A DNA stretch of 64,000 bases. Source: Salpingoeca rosetta. Its lineage: Eukaryota > Protista > Choanoflagellata. The DNA lies in contig JAWQFM010000005.1 of the NCBI GenBank assembly GCA_033442325.1, positions 2,138,313 to 2,202,312 of the forward strand, given 5' to 3'. Position 1 is the first letter of the stretch. Each line of letters opens with the position of its first letter. Shown here piece after piece: positions 200 to 63,160 of this stretch. Below the pieces are notes generated by a model. It ran no database searches. It was not told the origin of the DNA and saw only the letters and a list, made by a program, of their open reading frames with translations. The position numbers were made by a program, and so were the translations under genes.

Positions 200-320
200 G
201 CCACCCAATGGGCCCATTCCAGCTGCTGGACTACGTTGGCCTGGACACGACGAGCTTCATCACCCACGGCTGGGCCCGCGACTACCCCGTACGTCCCCAG
301 TGCCCAAACACAGGCCCATG

Positions 321-390
<70 letters not shown>

Positions 391-634
391 TTGTGTGTGT
401 GTGTGTGTGTGAATGCTTCGTTTGGGGAGGATCACGCACAAGCTGGTCTTTACATGCACAATAACCAGTCGTGCCAACATGCACGCATGCCACACATGAC
501 TCACCCCCCCCCCCCTCCTCTCGCTAATGCCACAGGACGTTGAGCTGTTCCAGCCGGTCAAGTCGATTGACGAGAAGGTGGAGCGCGGCGAGATGGGCGC
601 AAAGTCCGGCAAGGGATACTACGAGCACAAGTGA
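200..634 (+). CDS. HADH: 3-hydroxyacyl-CoA dehydrogenase, last two exons (200-288, 536-634); 5' part lies upstream of the window
   Basis: Spliced translation [30 protein letters not shown]|[32 protein letters not shown]. It carries the 3HCDH C-terminal motifs HPMGPFxLxDxVGLD and GxKSGKGFY. GT-AG intron 289-535. Confidence 0.9.
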
Positions 635-1458: not shown

Positions 1459-3792
1459 TCAATGCATTTGTCTGTAGGACTCTGCAATGGCCTTCCACTC
1501 GGCAAGGTTGGCGTCAATGGTGTCCAGGAGGAAATCAAGCTTGGGAAAGGCCTGTGACAGCTGCTGGTGCCATGGTTTGACAACAAAGTTGATAAAGCCA
1601 ATCTCGCCCTTGGCAAGCGACTCCTCGTCGTTGCCGCGCATAAACGGAAGCGATGGCAGGTTCATCTTCGCTTCAAGCTCAACCTATTTGTGTAGTTGAG
1701 CGTTTGTGTGTGAATGAGGGTGAGTGTGAGTGTGCGTTCATGTGTGTGTGAGTGTGTATGAGTGTGTGAGTGTGGGTGTGTGGGTGTGAGTACAAGTGTG
1801 CATGCGCGCACGTTTGAGAGTGCTCGATTTGAATGCGTGAGCTTGGTTCGAGAGTGACACGGATGTACAAGTCAAGGTGCACCCCCCCCCCAACACACAA
1901 ACCTGGTTGTTGAATTCCTTCTGGAGGCGGGCGGACCAGCGCTTGTTGCTCTCAAAGGGCTTGATGGGGTTGTGCAGGTCGGCCGTGTGCAGCAGCACAG
2001 CGAGCACAAACAGGCGCTGGTCATTGTTCTCGGCCAGGTTGATAAACCCTCCGAGGCGGTTCACCTCCTCCATCTTGGACAGCTTGGTGTGGTGCGTGGC
2101 CATGTCCGTGTTGAGGATACAGTTGATGATGACTGCGCGCAAGCGCTTGAACTCATCTTCGTCCAGGTTCTCCACAACGTTGCAGCCCTTCTCCAGCAGA
2201 ATCTCAAAGGCAAGGTGGCTGTGGTGGTTCTCCAACACGCTCTGGTCGTTGTACACGAGCGCAAGCTCGGAGCGGGAGTTGATGTGGAAGGCGTTGGTGA
2301 GGCCGTTGTGGTCCAGGTCGTGGCTCAGCGCCGCAATGAGCATGGCCAGCAGCTCAACCTCTGTGATAAACTCGGTGGCAACGGAGGTGAGGAGGAGGTA
2401 GGTGGTGTGCAGCACCATCACGGCGTGGCGCCAGTTGTGGAAGGGGTTCTTGTTGTACTGCGTGCGCACCTTCTGCAGCCACTTGCGCAGCTTCTTCTCG
2501 TCAATGTTGAACTGCTCAATCACGTGCAGCTCCTGGAACACGCGCACGCACACCGCCGTCAGGTCCTCGTCCGACTTGTCCAGCGCGTCAAAATCCCACG
2601 TGAAGAGGCTGGACGCCGCAAGCTTCTCTGCGTCCATGGCTGCGGAGTGGCCCTTGCGCCCGCGCGCGCGCTGCTGTGCCTTTGCGTCGTCGCCGCCCTT
2701 GCCGTCGGTCGAGCCCGAAAACTCGTTCATGATCCACGACTTGACGTCGTCGTCCACGCCGTCCAGCTGCGCCATGCGCGAGGAGGAGAGGTTGGTCTTG
2801 CGCATAACCTTGAGCATGCCCGTGAGCGCGGAGTGCATCTGCTGCACGCGCAGGGCGTTGATCTGCTCCAGGTTGCAGTTGACCATGATCATGGCCAGGC
2901 CAACCTTGGCGGCGTAGTCCGCCACGCAGTTCATGGCCTCGCCCACCTGGAAGTCGATGTACCCCTGGCGCCGCAGAAACTCGACCAAGGGGAAGATGCT
3001 CCAGGACATGACAATCTCGCAGCGCAGCAGGTGCAGGGCGTGGCGCGGGAGCGGCGGCGGCGGCTGGAAGTCCGGCTGCATGGCCTTGCCGAACATGCCC
3101 CACATGTGCAGCATGACATAGATGTACGTGGCGAAGGAGCCCGCAAACACGAAGAAGGCGGGCCAGCTCGGGAGGATGGAGGAGAGGGCGCCGCCGGCAA
3201 GGAGCAGCGCGTCTGCCGTGGCAATGTCGGAGACGGAGGAGCGGTCGGCGCGGGAGGCGAGGCCGCACCAGTACAGGAGGGTGGGGCAGGTGATGATCCA
3301 CTCCGCGTAGCGCATGAGCCAGACCGGGTTGCCCTGGGTGGAGTCGACAAGGAAGTAGAGGTTGAGGGTGGCCATGGAGAGGTAGGAGATGCAGGCGACG
3401 CCGTCGACGTAGGCCAGGATGCCGGACAGCACGCGCTTCTCATCGGAGACGGCGTTGACGTAGGCCAGGATGTCGAGGCCCGTAGCAAAGGCAAAGGCCA
3501 CGGAGGTGGCGCCGTAGAAGCTCTGCAGGTGGGAGAACTTGGCGAAGACGCGGCGGGACGCCTCCGGGTTGGCGAAGAAGATGAGGCTGCCCATCACGCA
3601 CAGCCAGACGATGATCATGAAGATGCCTTGCCATTGCACCTCCTTTGTACTGGCGATGGCAATGTTGCGGGTTTTTGCGCGGCGTTTCCCGCGCCCCGAC
3701 GATGATGCGCCTGAGGCCGCCGATGTCATGGAGTAGTTGTTCATCGACGCCTCCTGCAGCATGCTGCTGTTGGCAGCGTTCTTCCTGCCCAT
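1459..3792 (-). CDS. RhoPDE: Rhodopsin-phosphodiesterase (type-1 rhodopsin fused to class I cNMP PDE), 704 aa; exons 3792-1903 and 1683-1459
   Basis: Helix C motif WLMRYAEWIITCP (E164). Helix G DYAAKVG with retinal-binding Lys296 (codon 2905-2907). Extra N-terminal TM. PDE motifs FHNWRH, HDLDHNG, LENHH, TDMATH, HTADLHNP and EIGFI. One phase-0 GT-AG intron (1684-1902) gives 2115 nt. Confidence 0.97.
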
Positions 3793-4469
3793 GTCTGCTG
3801 TTGTGTGTGGCGTGTGTGTGTGTGTGTGTGTGGTGTGTTGAATGTGATGTGTGTGTGTGTGGTGCGTTGAATGCGATGTGTGTGTGTGGTGTGTTGAATG
3901 CGATGTGTGTGTGTGTGTGGTGTGTTGAATGTGATGTGTGTGTGTGTGTGTGTGTGGTTCTGTGATGTGATGTGTGTGTGTTGTGTGTGCGTGTGTGCGT
4001 GCGTTGGTGATTTGTGTGAGCACAAAGAGAACCAGCCACGAGAGCCAACAGCAAGTGGACAGAAAGCGGTACTGTTGAACAAGGTGTGGTGGACAAGAGC
4101 AGCAGGGCCCCCTCCCTCTCGTTTGCCCCGTTCACTCGTGCTCCAACCACAAGACCACACACTATGGGTTGATTGATTCTTTCACGAACCAAGCAGCCAG
4201 AACGGTTGTTGACGACATCACCACCACACAATTACACATCACGTCATCACCACACAGACACACACAGACACACACACACACACACAAGCGACACATCGCC
4301 CGCATCAGCCACACAACCACACACACACACACAGACACACACACAAACACACACCCCAACCCATCTGAACCGCCGCTCATCATCATCATCATCATCATCG
4401 TCCAGCACGCTGCCACCGCACCGCAACCAACCCTGTGGAACCCACCAACCTGTCTGCACGCAGCAACGC

Positions 4470-60419: not shown

Positions 60420-63160
60420 CTAGCTACAGAGGGGCTTGAAGCCAAAGGACTCGCCGCGATCGTGCGCGGCCTTGAGCTGCAGCGAACCGGAGACGAGCAG
60501 CATGATGGCTGCAAGGCCAATCACAAACCCCAGGATAAACGCAATCACAGAGGAGTTGCCCGTGCGCCGCACATACGAGTGGAGCAGGATCTGCCCAACA
60601 ACAGAGGCGGCCGCAGCCAGGAGGAAGAGGGCAATGCCATAGTCGTAGGGCACGCGGTTGAGGATGACAAACTGGGTGAACGAGCCCGCAGAGGTGAAGA
60701 GCGTCATGTATGCCGTGGTCGCCGAGCTCACCTGTTTGTGGTGGACACAAGCAGCTGTGGTGAGCCCTGTCATCAAAGGGAAATGGAATGCACGCAGAGC
60801 CAGCAGGCTGGCCAACAGAGATGCAGGCAGACGACTGGATAGACTTACAGATACGCACTGCCACCTGGACAGACAGACTGACTGACTGACTGACACACAC
60901 ACTTACATACAAGGACACACAGGCGTACACACGCGCGCAAGTGCAGAGCATAACAGCGACAAAGGCTCGCTGACACCACCAGCATCAACATGTCGCAGGC
61001 CACTCACGAGCGGGTGCATGTTGAATTGGAGGAGAAGAGGAGCGAGGACCATGCCGCCGCCAATGCCGAGGAAGCCAGCAAGCATACCGGCAACAAGGGC
61101 TGGAGGTGCGCAGTGGACGGCAGCAGTGTGAGAAGCACGAACATACGCCCTTGCGTGCGTCTGGGGCAGGAAAAACCACGTCACATACACACATACAGAT
61201 ACACATACAGACAGACGCACACACACACACACGCACAGAGCACACAAACAGGCGGACACACGCACACAGACACACATGCACACACATGCACACGCCACAG
61301 AGCACACAAACAGAAACACACACACACGTACACCAGTACGAACATACCAAAGAAGAGGTACTTGGCGACGCCGCCACCAATGTAGTCAATGTCGCCTTCC
61401 ACAAAGGTGTAGTTGACAGCAAGCCGTCGCTCGTGGTGGCGCTTCACATACAGATACCCGCCAAACGTGCACAGCAGGAGGAAGCAAAACGTGGACACCT
61501 GCACGCCCCAGTACGCGCCATCACCGCACATGATGCCGGCGAGGGAGGTTCCCGAACCACCGCGAATCATGGAGAACACAATCACGCCGCCAAGTTCAAA
61601 CAGGGTGATGAGCATCGGCGTCCACGGGATTGCGGCCTCTTCCTTCAGCAGCTTCTCCCGCGCCTCCTGCAGGCGCTGCTTGTCTGCCGTGCTCGAGCTC
61701 ATGCCCTTCATCTCCACGCGCTCCATGCTGTCGTCGCTGTCGTTCCTGCGGCGGTTGTGCGCGCCATTGTCGTCAGCATCGTCGGCTGGGCCAGAGTAGT
61801 CCACCACCAGCACCTCCCCGCCGCTCAAGCTGCTCCTGCTGCGCCGCTGGGACTGCCGCTGCCGGCTGGTGGTGCTGCTGCTGCTGGTGCTGCGCGACAT
61901 GCCTCCCTTCTTGGTGTCTTGGCTGGCGGCAGCAGTTGTGTCGGGGCCACCGTTGCTTGCTGCGTTGCCATCACTGCTGGACCCGAGGGCGTCACGCTTC
62001 GCGTCCTCGCCCACTGTGTCGATGGTCTCCGTGGTGCCTGAGTCCTCCTCGCCGTTGACGCTGTTTGGATCGTTGATGCCGTGCTTGACAATGGAGCGGC
62101 GTGGCAGCGCCCGCGCCTCCTGCTCCTGCCGCCGCAGCTCACGGCCTTTGACAAGCGTCTTGAATGTCGTGAAGACAAGCACGATGATGACAACAACCAG
62201 CACGAGCCAGTCCGGGGATACGGTGTTGAAGATGACACCCACGACGGTGCCGGCGAGGGCGAGCGGCAGCAGCATGAGGATGGTGTCAAAGTCGATGACG
62301 CGGCGGTGTTGCGCGCCGGGCAGCGGGTGCCGCCTGCGGATCTGGAAGAAAAACTGCACAATGGAGGCGCCGACAATGGCTGTGGACGACAGCGGGACGG
62401 CGTAGTATGGCGGGAAGAGGGTGATGACGCTGAGGATGGGGATGATGAGACCGCCACCGCCAATGCCGCCGGCACTGGACATGCCCAGGAACACAAACAG
62501 GACAATCAGCGTGCCCACGTCCTGGCCCACGCCCGTCGAGCTGAACAGGTCCACGTGGTCGCACTGAAAGTCTGCGTGCGAGCGAACGCGGTTGTTGGGT
62601 TGGCATGCAGTAAGTGAGTGAGAGAGTGAGTGAGAGTGCGAGTGAGTGAGTGAGTGAGTGAGTGTGCACCTATGTGTCAAGATGTGTGTCCGAGTGTCTA
62701 TGCAACGTGACACACACACACACACACACACAGAGCGACGGGGGAGGCACACTTGAGATGCCTTCTCCTGTACGTTTACCTGTTGTGTTGGTTGCCAAGT
62801 CCACGTCGCGGTTGCACAAGTACATTGGCGACGAGCAGTCATCGGGGCACCCTCCGGACGGACAGGTGTAGTTGTGTGTTTTCTGCGGGCGCAACACAAA
62901 CATGCACACAGAGAGGTTGAGAGGGAAGCGCGGCATGCGTGCGAGGTGGCGGAAGACTTAGGAACAGGAATAGGATTGCGACGAGGTGGAGGACGAGTGA
63001 GCATTTACGCAGAGGACTGGGGTGGGGGGATCAGTGCAATCGCCACAACAAACACACAGTGGCTTACGCAAAGGTTGCCGCTTGTGCCTTGCACTAGTGG
63101 CAGCAGCATCATGATGATGAGGCTGGCGCAGGTCGCCAAGGACAGCAATGACGGCGCCAT
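60420..63160 (-). CDS. TauE/SafE (TSUP) sulfite-exporter family membrane protein with signal peptide and Cys-rich N-terminus
   Basis: MAPSLLSLATCASLIIMMLLPLVQG signal. Duplicated glycine motifs AGGIGGGGLIIPIL and AGFLGIGGGMVLAPLL. IDFDTILMLLPLALAGT and VSSATTAYMTLFTS; ends KPLCS*. Confidence 0.88.

Follow-up and report, generated by a model that had tools for sequence, protein, structure and literature searches.

The Salpingoeca rosetta rhodopsin phosphodiesterase gene: structure, transcript and relation to other light-regulated enzymes

The gene at positions 1459-3792 (minus strand) of the window, that is, of the 64,000-nt stretch of S. rosetta DNA analysed here, is almost certainly the published SrRh-PDE (RhoPDE) gene, which yields one spliced mRNA and a 704-aa phosphodiesterase (PDE) with light-enhanced activity. 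Nothing in our analysis speaks against this identity. SrRh-PDE is not merely a member of the Rh-PDE family but its founding member, and it is already known in detail, having been discovered in 2017, solved in four PDB entries, mutagenised and used in optogenetics; the family has been in the literature since that year (PMC7590022). Identity, architecture and the single transcript are established here; the photochemistry and enzymology are those published for this same protein.

To our knowledge, Rh-PDEs are the only natural light-activated phosphodiesterases, and their hosts, the choanoflagellates, are the closest unicellular relatives of animals. These enzymes are of interest for the optogenetic lowering of cGMP and cAMP as well as for the origin of phototransduction logic. 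Working from raw sequence, an unaided reader had arrived at the right gene model, key residues and family, and this first-pass annotation therefore serves as a positive control.

Gene structure and identity with the crystallised protein

The coding sequence runs on the minus strand from an ATG at 3792-3790 to a TGA at 1461-1459. When spliced by script, its two coding exons give a product of 704 aa containing no internal stops. The gene and its parts are laid out as follows.

1903-3792, minus strand: coding exon 1, 1890 nt, residues 1-630, comprising the N-terminal tail, TM0, rhodopsin TM1-7, the linker and the larger part of the PDE catalytic domain (open reading frame, mismatch-free PDB alignment, continuous RNA coverage)
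3574-3645, minus strand: TM0, the extra eighth transmembrane helix, residues 50-73 in the structure solved for this same sequence (PMC7644710)
2866-3528, minus strand: type-1 rhodopsin domain (Pfam Bac_rhodopsin, PF01036), residues 89-309, E 2.2e-56, score 191 bits (cut-off 24.6), spanning profile positions 2-223 of 224
3301-3303, minus strand: E164 in helix C, at the position of bacteriorhodopsin D85 (motif script; PMC7644710)
2917-2919, minus strand: D292, the only counterion of the Schiff base (motif script; PMC7644710)
2905-2907, minus strand: K296, the retinal Schiff-base lysine in TM7 (motif script; PMC7644710)
2635-2862, minus strand: linker, residues 311-386, opening as a cytosolic helical extension of TM7; its end was derived from the start (311) and the length (76 residues), both from PMC7644710
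1903-2442, minus strand: exon-1 part of the class I PDE domain (Pfam PDEase_I, PF00233), residues 451-630, E 1.1e-60, profile positions 1-183
1684-1902, minus strand: sole intron, 219 nt, GT..AG (GTTTGT...AAATAG), with much CA-type simple sequence (RNA joint and drop in depth)
1516-1680, minus strand: exon-2 part of PDEase_I, residues 632-686, E 6.1e-9, profile positions 185-238, containing E657 near the substrate pocket
1459-1683, minus strand: coding exon 2, residues 631-704 and the TGA, encoding the C-terminal PDE helices (PDEase_I profile positions 185-238, PDB alignment)

Scores for both families lie far over the Pfam gathering cut-offs, well outside what chance would give. Together, the two exons cover PDEase_I profile positions 1-238; the catalytic domain is complete and is split cleanly by the intron. 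The junction between rhodopsin and PDE lies within exon 1, which ends only at Q630 of the PDE domain. A motif script located RYAEW at residues 161-165 (with E164) and DYAAK at 292-296 (with D292 and K296), the linker helix NLEQINALRVQQMHSALTGMLKVMRK at 307-332, and four PDE motifs, namely FHNWRH at 451-456 (HNWRH being residues 452-456), HDLDH at 491-495 (window 2308-2322), TDM at 562-564 and ADLHNP at 604-609. W175 stands where bacteriorhodopsin has its proton donor D96. Ahead of the Pfam rhodopsin domain, a script marks a hydrophobic segment at residues 52-79, and an extra helix of this kind, TM0, is typical of enzyme rhodopsins. Every feature of the Rh-PDE family that can be tested in sequence was found: a type-1 rhodopsin, the Schiff-base lysine and its counterion, TM0, a complete class I PDE domain, and both parts encoded by one transcript as one polypeptide.

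The start of the protein deserves comment, given that the longest open reading frame overlapping the gene (1738-4023, minus strand) reaches further upstream. We rejected an extension to the GTG at 4023, as in this frame the upstream stretch is a CA microsatellite that translates into His-Thr repeats and contains no ATG. Because this stretch lacks methionine, the ATG at 3792 was taken as the first usable start, and the published residue numbering is consistent with it.

Residues 33-704 of the product align to the PDB chains 7CJ3, 7D7Q, 7D7P and 5VYD combined with 0 mismatches. The match to 7CJ3 covers residues 33-316 and then reaches the tag, and that to 7D7Q covers residues 33-378, with residue 379 meeting the tag of the construct. 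In 7D7P, residues 346-630 correspond to chain positions 1-285 and residues 631-703 to 286-358; in 5VYD, an earlier PDE-domain structure of S. rosetta Rh-PDE, residues 387-630 correspond to positions 1-244 and residues 631-704 to 245-318. The numbering of both chains thus runs gap-free over the predicted splice junction. The first three entries are the transmembrane domain (7CJ3, aa 33-316), the transmembrane domain with linker (7D7Q, aa 33-378) and the linker-PDE (7D7P) of S. rosetta Rh-PDE, NCBI Gene 16078606 (PMC7644710). The reference protein is XP_004998010.1, for which the mutants L623F and E657Q have been described (PMC8774190). All residues that we compared with the literature, K296, D292, E164, W175, W63 and S136 (PMC7644710) as well as L623 and E657 (PMC8774190), carry the same numbers here. 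Residues 1-32 lie outside all PDB chains, and that they agree with the reference is supported indirectly, by the numbering, the lack of an upstream in-frame ATG and the RNA coverage.

These results agree with most of what the first-pass annotation had read from the letters. Its 704-aa, two-exon gene at 1459-3792 was borne out by the reading frame, the splicing and the RNA joint, and the motif script returned E164, D292, K296, the linker helix and the four PDE motifs at the places it had given. Its call of a type-1 rhodopsin joined to a complete class I PDE holds by the Pfam scores listed above, and the assignment to the choanoflagellate Rh-PDEs, specifically to the S. rosetta protein, by the mismatch-free alignment to the PDB constructs. 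The match in length and residue numbering to the known protein that it had stated was likewise correct (K296, D292, E164, L623 and E657 agree with the literature), as was the expectation that the family had been described, which it has been since 2017.

The surroundings of the gene are plain. CA/GT microsatellites lie on both flanks, and similar CA-rich simple sequence occurs in the intron. Neighbouring large open reading frames are of low complexity and carry no Pfam families, the exception, at 61184-63004, being a TauE-like permease. Among the neighbouring large reading frames of the window searched with Pfam, nothing resembled an operon or a gene cluster.

Light regulation and the supply of retinal

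The published structures explain how the conserved residues are used. The rhodopsin domain consists of 8 TM helices, a topology that leaves both termini in the cytosol; TM0 packs on TM2 and TM3, and without it neither stable binding of retinal nor regulation by light is achieved (PMC7644710). The all-trans retinal sits on K296, D292 serves as the sole counterion, and E164 is protonated and hydrogen-bonds D292; in 7CJ3, retinal is held by these same K296 and D292 residues (PMC7644710). Rh-PDE is dimeric, its PDE domain being loosely coupled to the membrane domain via the 76-residue linker, and this loose coupling is thought to cause the high dark activity (PMC7644710). The action maximum lies at ~492 nm, and cGMP is preferred ~10-fold over cAMP (PMC7590022). 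In PMC12004702, light lowers the Km for cGMP from ~80 to ~13 uM and raises kcat from ~22 to ~28 per s, and the M state decays in ~4 s. Another study gives a turnover of ~12 per s in the dark vs ~28 per s in the light (PMC8774190).

Taken together, the protein sits in the membrane with a cytosolic N-terminus followed by TM0, the 7-TM type-1 rhodopsin, the 76-residue linker extending TM7 and a class I Zn/Mg PDE. Blue-green light (~492 nm) drives a retinal photocycle with a seconds-long M state, whose signal passes through the linker in the dimer and increases the hydrolysis of cGMP, with cAMP affected ~10x more weakly. The gain in hydrolysis stems mainly from the lower Km (80 to 13 uM), with a slight rise in kcat. 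By analogy with Choanoeca flexa, we infer that light would keep cGMP low in S. rosetta and that darkness would let it rise.

How strongly light acts on the enzyme is a separate matter. The first-pass annotation had called the protein light-gated, which is correct insofar as light-enhanced hydrolysis has been published, but overstates an effect with a ratio of only ~1.4-4 and high dark activity: light/dark ratios are 1.4-1.6 in HEK cells, ~2-3 in Ikuta et al. and up to ~4 at low substrate (PMC7644710, PMC8774190, PMC7590022). SrRh-PDE could accordingly be seen as an essentially constitutive, membrane-anchored PDE that its rhodopsin hardly regulates in vivo, if at all. The dark turnover cited above would fit such an enzyme, as would one study of purified protein that saw no light regulation, as cited in PMC7590022, and the failure to detect an RPE65-type or Blh-type enzyme in the genome (for Blh, with blank controls), which implies that the holoprotein needs retinal from outside. 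Against this stand several independent laboratories that have reported light-enhanced hydrolysis by the identical protein (PMC7644710, PMC12004702, PMC8774190, PMC7590022), the intact K296, D292 and retinal pocket, and the C. flexa relatives, which have been linked to a retinal-dependent, cGMP-mediated light response. We consider a constitutive enzyme improbable and retain the reading of SrRh-PDE as a light-enhanced PDE. That the rhodopsin part is instead a light-driven ion pump or channel to which the PDE is merely attached, as its full-length Bac_rhodopsin match might suggest, has next to no probability, since W175 at the D96 position closes the cytoplasmic pathway in the crystal structure and E164 is permanently protonated and hydrogen-bonded to D292, which according to the authors may rule out activity as a pump or channel (PMC7644710).

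The SrRh-PDE fusion is the only rhodopsin of S. rosetta; in a six-frame profile search of the whole 55.4-Mb genome (68 contigs), this locus gave the only Bac_rhodopsin match. The PDEase_I profile found it together with ~5 other class I PDE loci without a rhodopsin, on contigs 31, 11, 4, 6 and 8. An exon-by-exon six-frame search of the 55.4-Mb genome returned no RPE65-type carotenoid oxygenase (PF03055), a profile that was positive in the control genomes, although such a search does not prove absence. The Blh/BCD-type profile (PF15461) had no match in the six-frame HMM search of the genome, but is uninformative given that the controls were blank too. For PF05834, we obtained a weak N-terminal match of 50 residues, and the family also matches in E. 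coli; a lycopene cyclase assignment was rejected because the match is weak and unspecific.

The missing RPE65-type enzyme fits a dependence on retinal derived from prey, as has been shown for C. flexa. We tentatively suggest, while leaning somewhat against it, that SrRh-PDE may need retinal, or a precursor cleaved by other means, from bacterial prey and may be functional in its host only with carotenoid- or retinal-producing food. If true, such a dependence could explain that no light behaviour has been reported for S. rosetta in monoxenic culture. This reading is an extension of the C. flexa result and not a new kind of system.

Evidence for a single transcript

Since the proteins used for crystallisation derive from a synthetic gene designed after the gene model (PMC7644710), we checked the RNA independently. 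The material comprised two stranded RNA-seq runs from 2026, used as raw reads, and two older contig sets (2011 and 2024). The gene stretch is contained in 20 public S. rosetta runs, many of which match 0.90 of the sampled words, the share to be expected when the 219-nt intron, 9% of the stretch, is absent.

Only one joint exists in the span. It skips 219 nt, with CT..AC at its ends when read on the plus strand and GT..AG when read on the minus strand, the equivalent cut lying at 1684-1902, and is supported by 87 raw spliced reads (57 + 30, from 21 + 16 start positions) plus one contig each from 2011 and 2024. These spliced contigs, 2204 and 2203 nt in length, start ~38 nt ahead of the ATG and end 50 nt past the stop, with 0 mismatches and the intron absent. 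RNA depth in the intron is ~1-4 vs ~55-125 in the adjoining bins. Nearly all reads have one orientation, with the first mate on the plus strand, which, as in the usual stranded library, indicates minus-strand RNA, and the raw stranded reads cover the rhodopsin-PDE junction region continuously. The rhodopsin-PDE fusion is one transcript.

These data settle whether the fusion could be an artefact of the gene model, with rhodopsin and PDE being neighbouring genes or residing on separate transcripts. What could be said for this view is that the structures derive from a synthetic gene on the predicted model and are not independent proof of a transcript; we know of no other point in its favour. Both domains share one uninterrupted 1890-nt exon, and the two ~2.2-kb contigs, from different studies, run from ATG to stop with the intron removed and show no extra joint. 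An artefact is refuted by this RNA evidence and has virtually no probability left. The first-pass annotation had placed the junction inside the 1890-nt exon and excluded an artefact on that ground, naming domains on separate transcripts as a result that would count against it; the single exon bears out the placement, and the 2.2-kb contigs and the continuous reads span both domains.

A second large reading frame, on the plus strand at 1972-3705 (577 aa), was rejected as a gene, given that reads in the opposite orientation amount to 0-3 per bin vs 15-140 in sense in the stranded RNA-seq. In our judgement, its Ala/Gly/Val/Leu-rich translation resembles what a GC-rich coding strand gives when read in antisense.

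As a separate observation, in each of the two raw runs ~10% of the RNA reads (3/31 and 9/84) carry a G>C change at window position 3286. On the coding strand, it would turn codon 169 from TGC (Cys) into TGG (Trp), a difference that RNA reads alone cannot separate from systematic sequencing error.

Comparison with known light-regulated systems

The closest known relatives of SrRh-PDE are found in other choanoflagellates. CfRhPDE1 of Choanoeca flexa and MrRhoPDE of Microstomoeca roanoka have the same architecture, in which an 8-TM rhodopsin, a linker and a PDE follow one another, and show light-enhanced hydrolysis of cGMP. Their identity to SrRhoPDE is 63% for CfRhPDE1 and 79% for MrRhoPDE (PMC8774190). 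CfRhPDE1 has the higher affinity for cGMP, with Km values of 1.9 and 4.4 uM compared with 13 and 80 uM for SrRhPDE (PMC12004702). While S. rosetta contains a single copy, C. flexa possesses four paralogues. The two species also differ in behaviour: C. flexa has a documented retinal- and cGMP-dependent light response, the inversion of its sheets, in which the role of RhoPDE was putative in that study, whereas no light behaviour is known for S. rosetta.

The fungal rhodopsin guanylyl cyclases (BeGC1/BeCyclop) likewise possess an additional TM helix at the N-terminus and, fused behind TM7, a cytosolic enzyme acting on cyclic nucleotides (PMC7644710). Their output is the opposite, as the enzyme is a cyclase, and their switch is far tighter, with low dark activity and a ~5000-fold change, compared with ~2-fold in SrRh-PDE (PMC7644710).

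Phototransduction in animal rods follows the same logic, with light activating a class I PDE so that cGMP falls, and the PDE catalytic domains are homologous. Rods, however, rely on a type-2 opsin, transducin and PDE6, whereas SrRh-PDE uses a type-1 rhodopsin, involves no G protein and unites sensor and enzyme in one polypeptide. Among the best non-self PDB matches, exon 1 returns a mix of PDE4, PDE9 and PDE5, and the short exon 2 returns PDE6, trypanosomatid PDEB1 and PDE10; judged from these sequence matches, the catalytic domain is not specifically PDE6-like. The parallel to the animal opsin-transducin-PDE6 cascade that the first-pass annotation had drawn consequently stands for the logic of the design and fails as homology: given the type-1 rhodopsin and the mixed PDE4, PDE9 and PDE5 domains that come closest, S. 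rosetta and animal rods share an analogy of design.

Antisense reading frame and repeats around Rh-PDE

The strand opposite the rhodopsin-phosphodiesterase gene (Rh-PDE) carries a long open reading frame, and the gene is flanked and interrupted by repeats.

1972-3705, plus strand: ORF of 577 aa, antisense to the Rh-PDE coding exon
1300-1450: long imperfect CA/GT microsatellite, directly 3' of the Rh-PDE stop
1700-1830: long imperfect CA/GT microsatellite, inside the single Rh-PDE intron
3800-4000: long imperfect CA/GT microsatellite, directly 5' of the Rh-PDE start codon

Stranded RNA-seq yielded essentially no reads in the orientation of the antisense ORF, which was rejected as a real gene; its open frame most likely arises as a side effect of GC-rich codon usage on the opposite, coding strand. 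The RNA-derived contigs of Rh-PDE end ~38 and ~50 nt beyond the limits of the CDS; breaks in assembly at the microsatellites are the probable cause, so the contig ends may not be the true UTR ends.

Further reading frames in the window

208-400, plus strand: start of an ORF, read over 22 residues
18500-29503, plus strand: two very long back-to-back ORFs of 1405 and 2261 aa
61184-63004, minus strand: ORF of 607 aa, matching membrane proteins of the TauE/SafE sulfite-exporter family (E 2.9e-11)

The start of the first ORF appears to resemble the C-terminal domain of 3-hydroxyacyl-CoA dehydrogenases, and the ORF is probably the final exon of a gene starting ahead of the window. The 1405-aa and 2261-aa ORFs are divided by one stop codon alone, contain polyQ and other low-complexity tracts (e.g. 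a KH repeat) and match no Pfam family; they may represent a single giant orphan gene with one or more introns.

Retinal supply and other class I PDE loci

Searches of the whole S. rosetta genome returned no match to RPE65-type carotenoid oxygenases (PF03055), a profile that did match in the control genomes, and none to Blh/BCD (PF15461), for which the controls were equally without match, so that this blank carries no weight; the lycopene-cyclase search gave only a weak, unspecific match. The sole rhodopsin of S. rosetta may depend on retinal, or on cleaved carotenoid, from prey bacteria. Besides Rh-PDE, the genome contains five class I PDE loci, none of which adjoins a rhodopsin domain.

Class I PDE loci other than Rh-PDE, by genome contig
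C31: 260760-262071
C11: 211874-213609
C4: 1879986-1881392
C6: 1196109-1197643
C8: 446357-447640

Codon 169 and residue E657 of Rh-PDE

At position 3286 (plus strand), ~10% of the stranded RNA-seq reads carry C in place of G (3/31 in one run, 9/84 in the other), changing codon 169 on the coding strand from TGC (Cys) to TGG (Trp) in helix C, shortly past E164. This variant, found in neither of the two contig sets, may reflect either an allele carried by a subpopulation or systematic sequencing error within a run of G/C.

In the PDE domain, E657 (1603-1605, exon 2, minus strand) lies within the motif KGEIGFINF, and this Glu apparently occupies the position presumably held in other class I PDEs by an invariant, substrate-clamping glutamine. 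The E657Q mutant of Rh-PDE has been reported to show ~30-fold lower activity at an unchanged light/dark ratio (PMC8774190).
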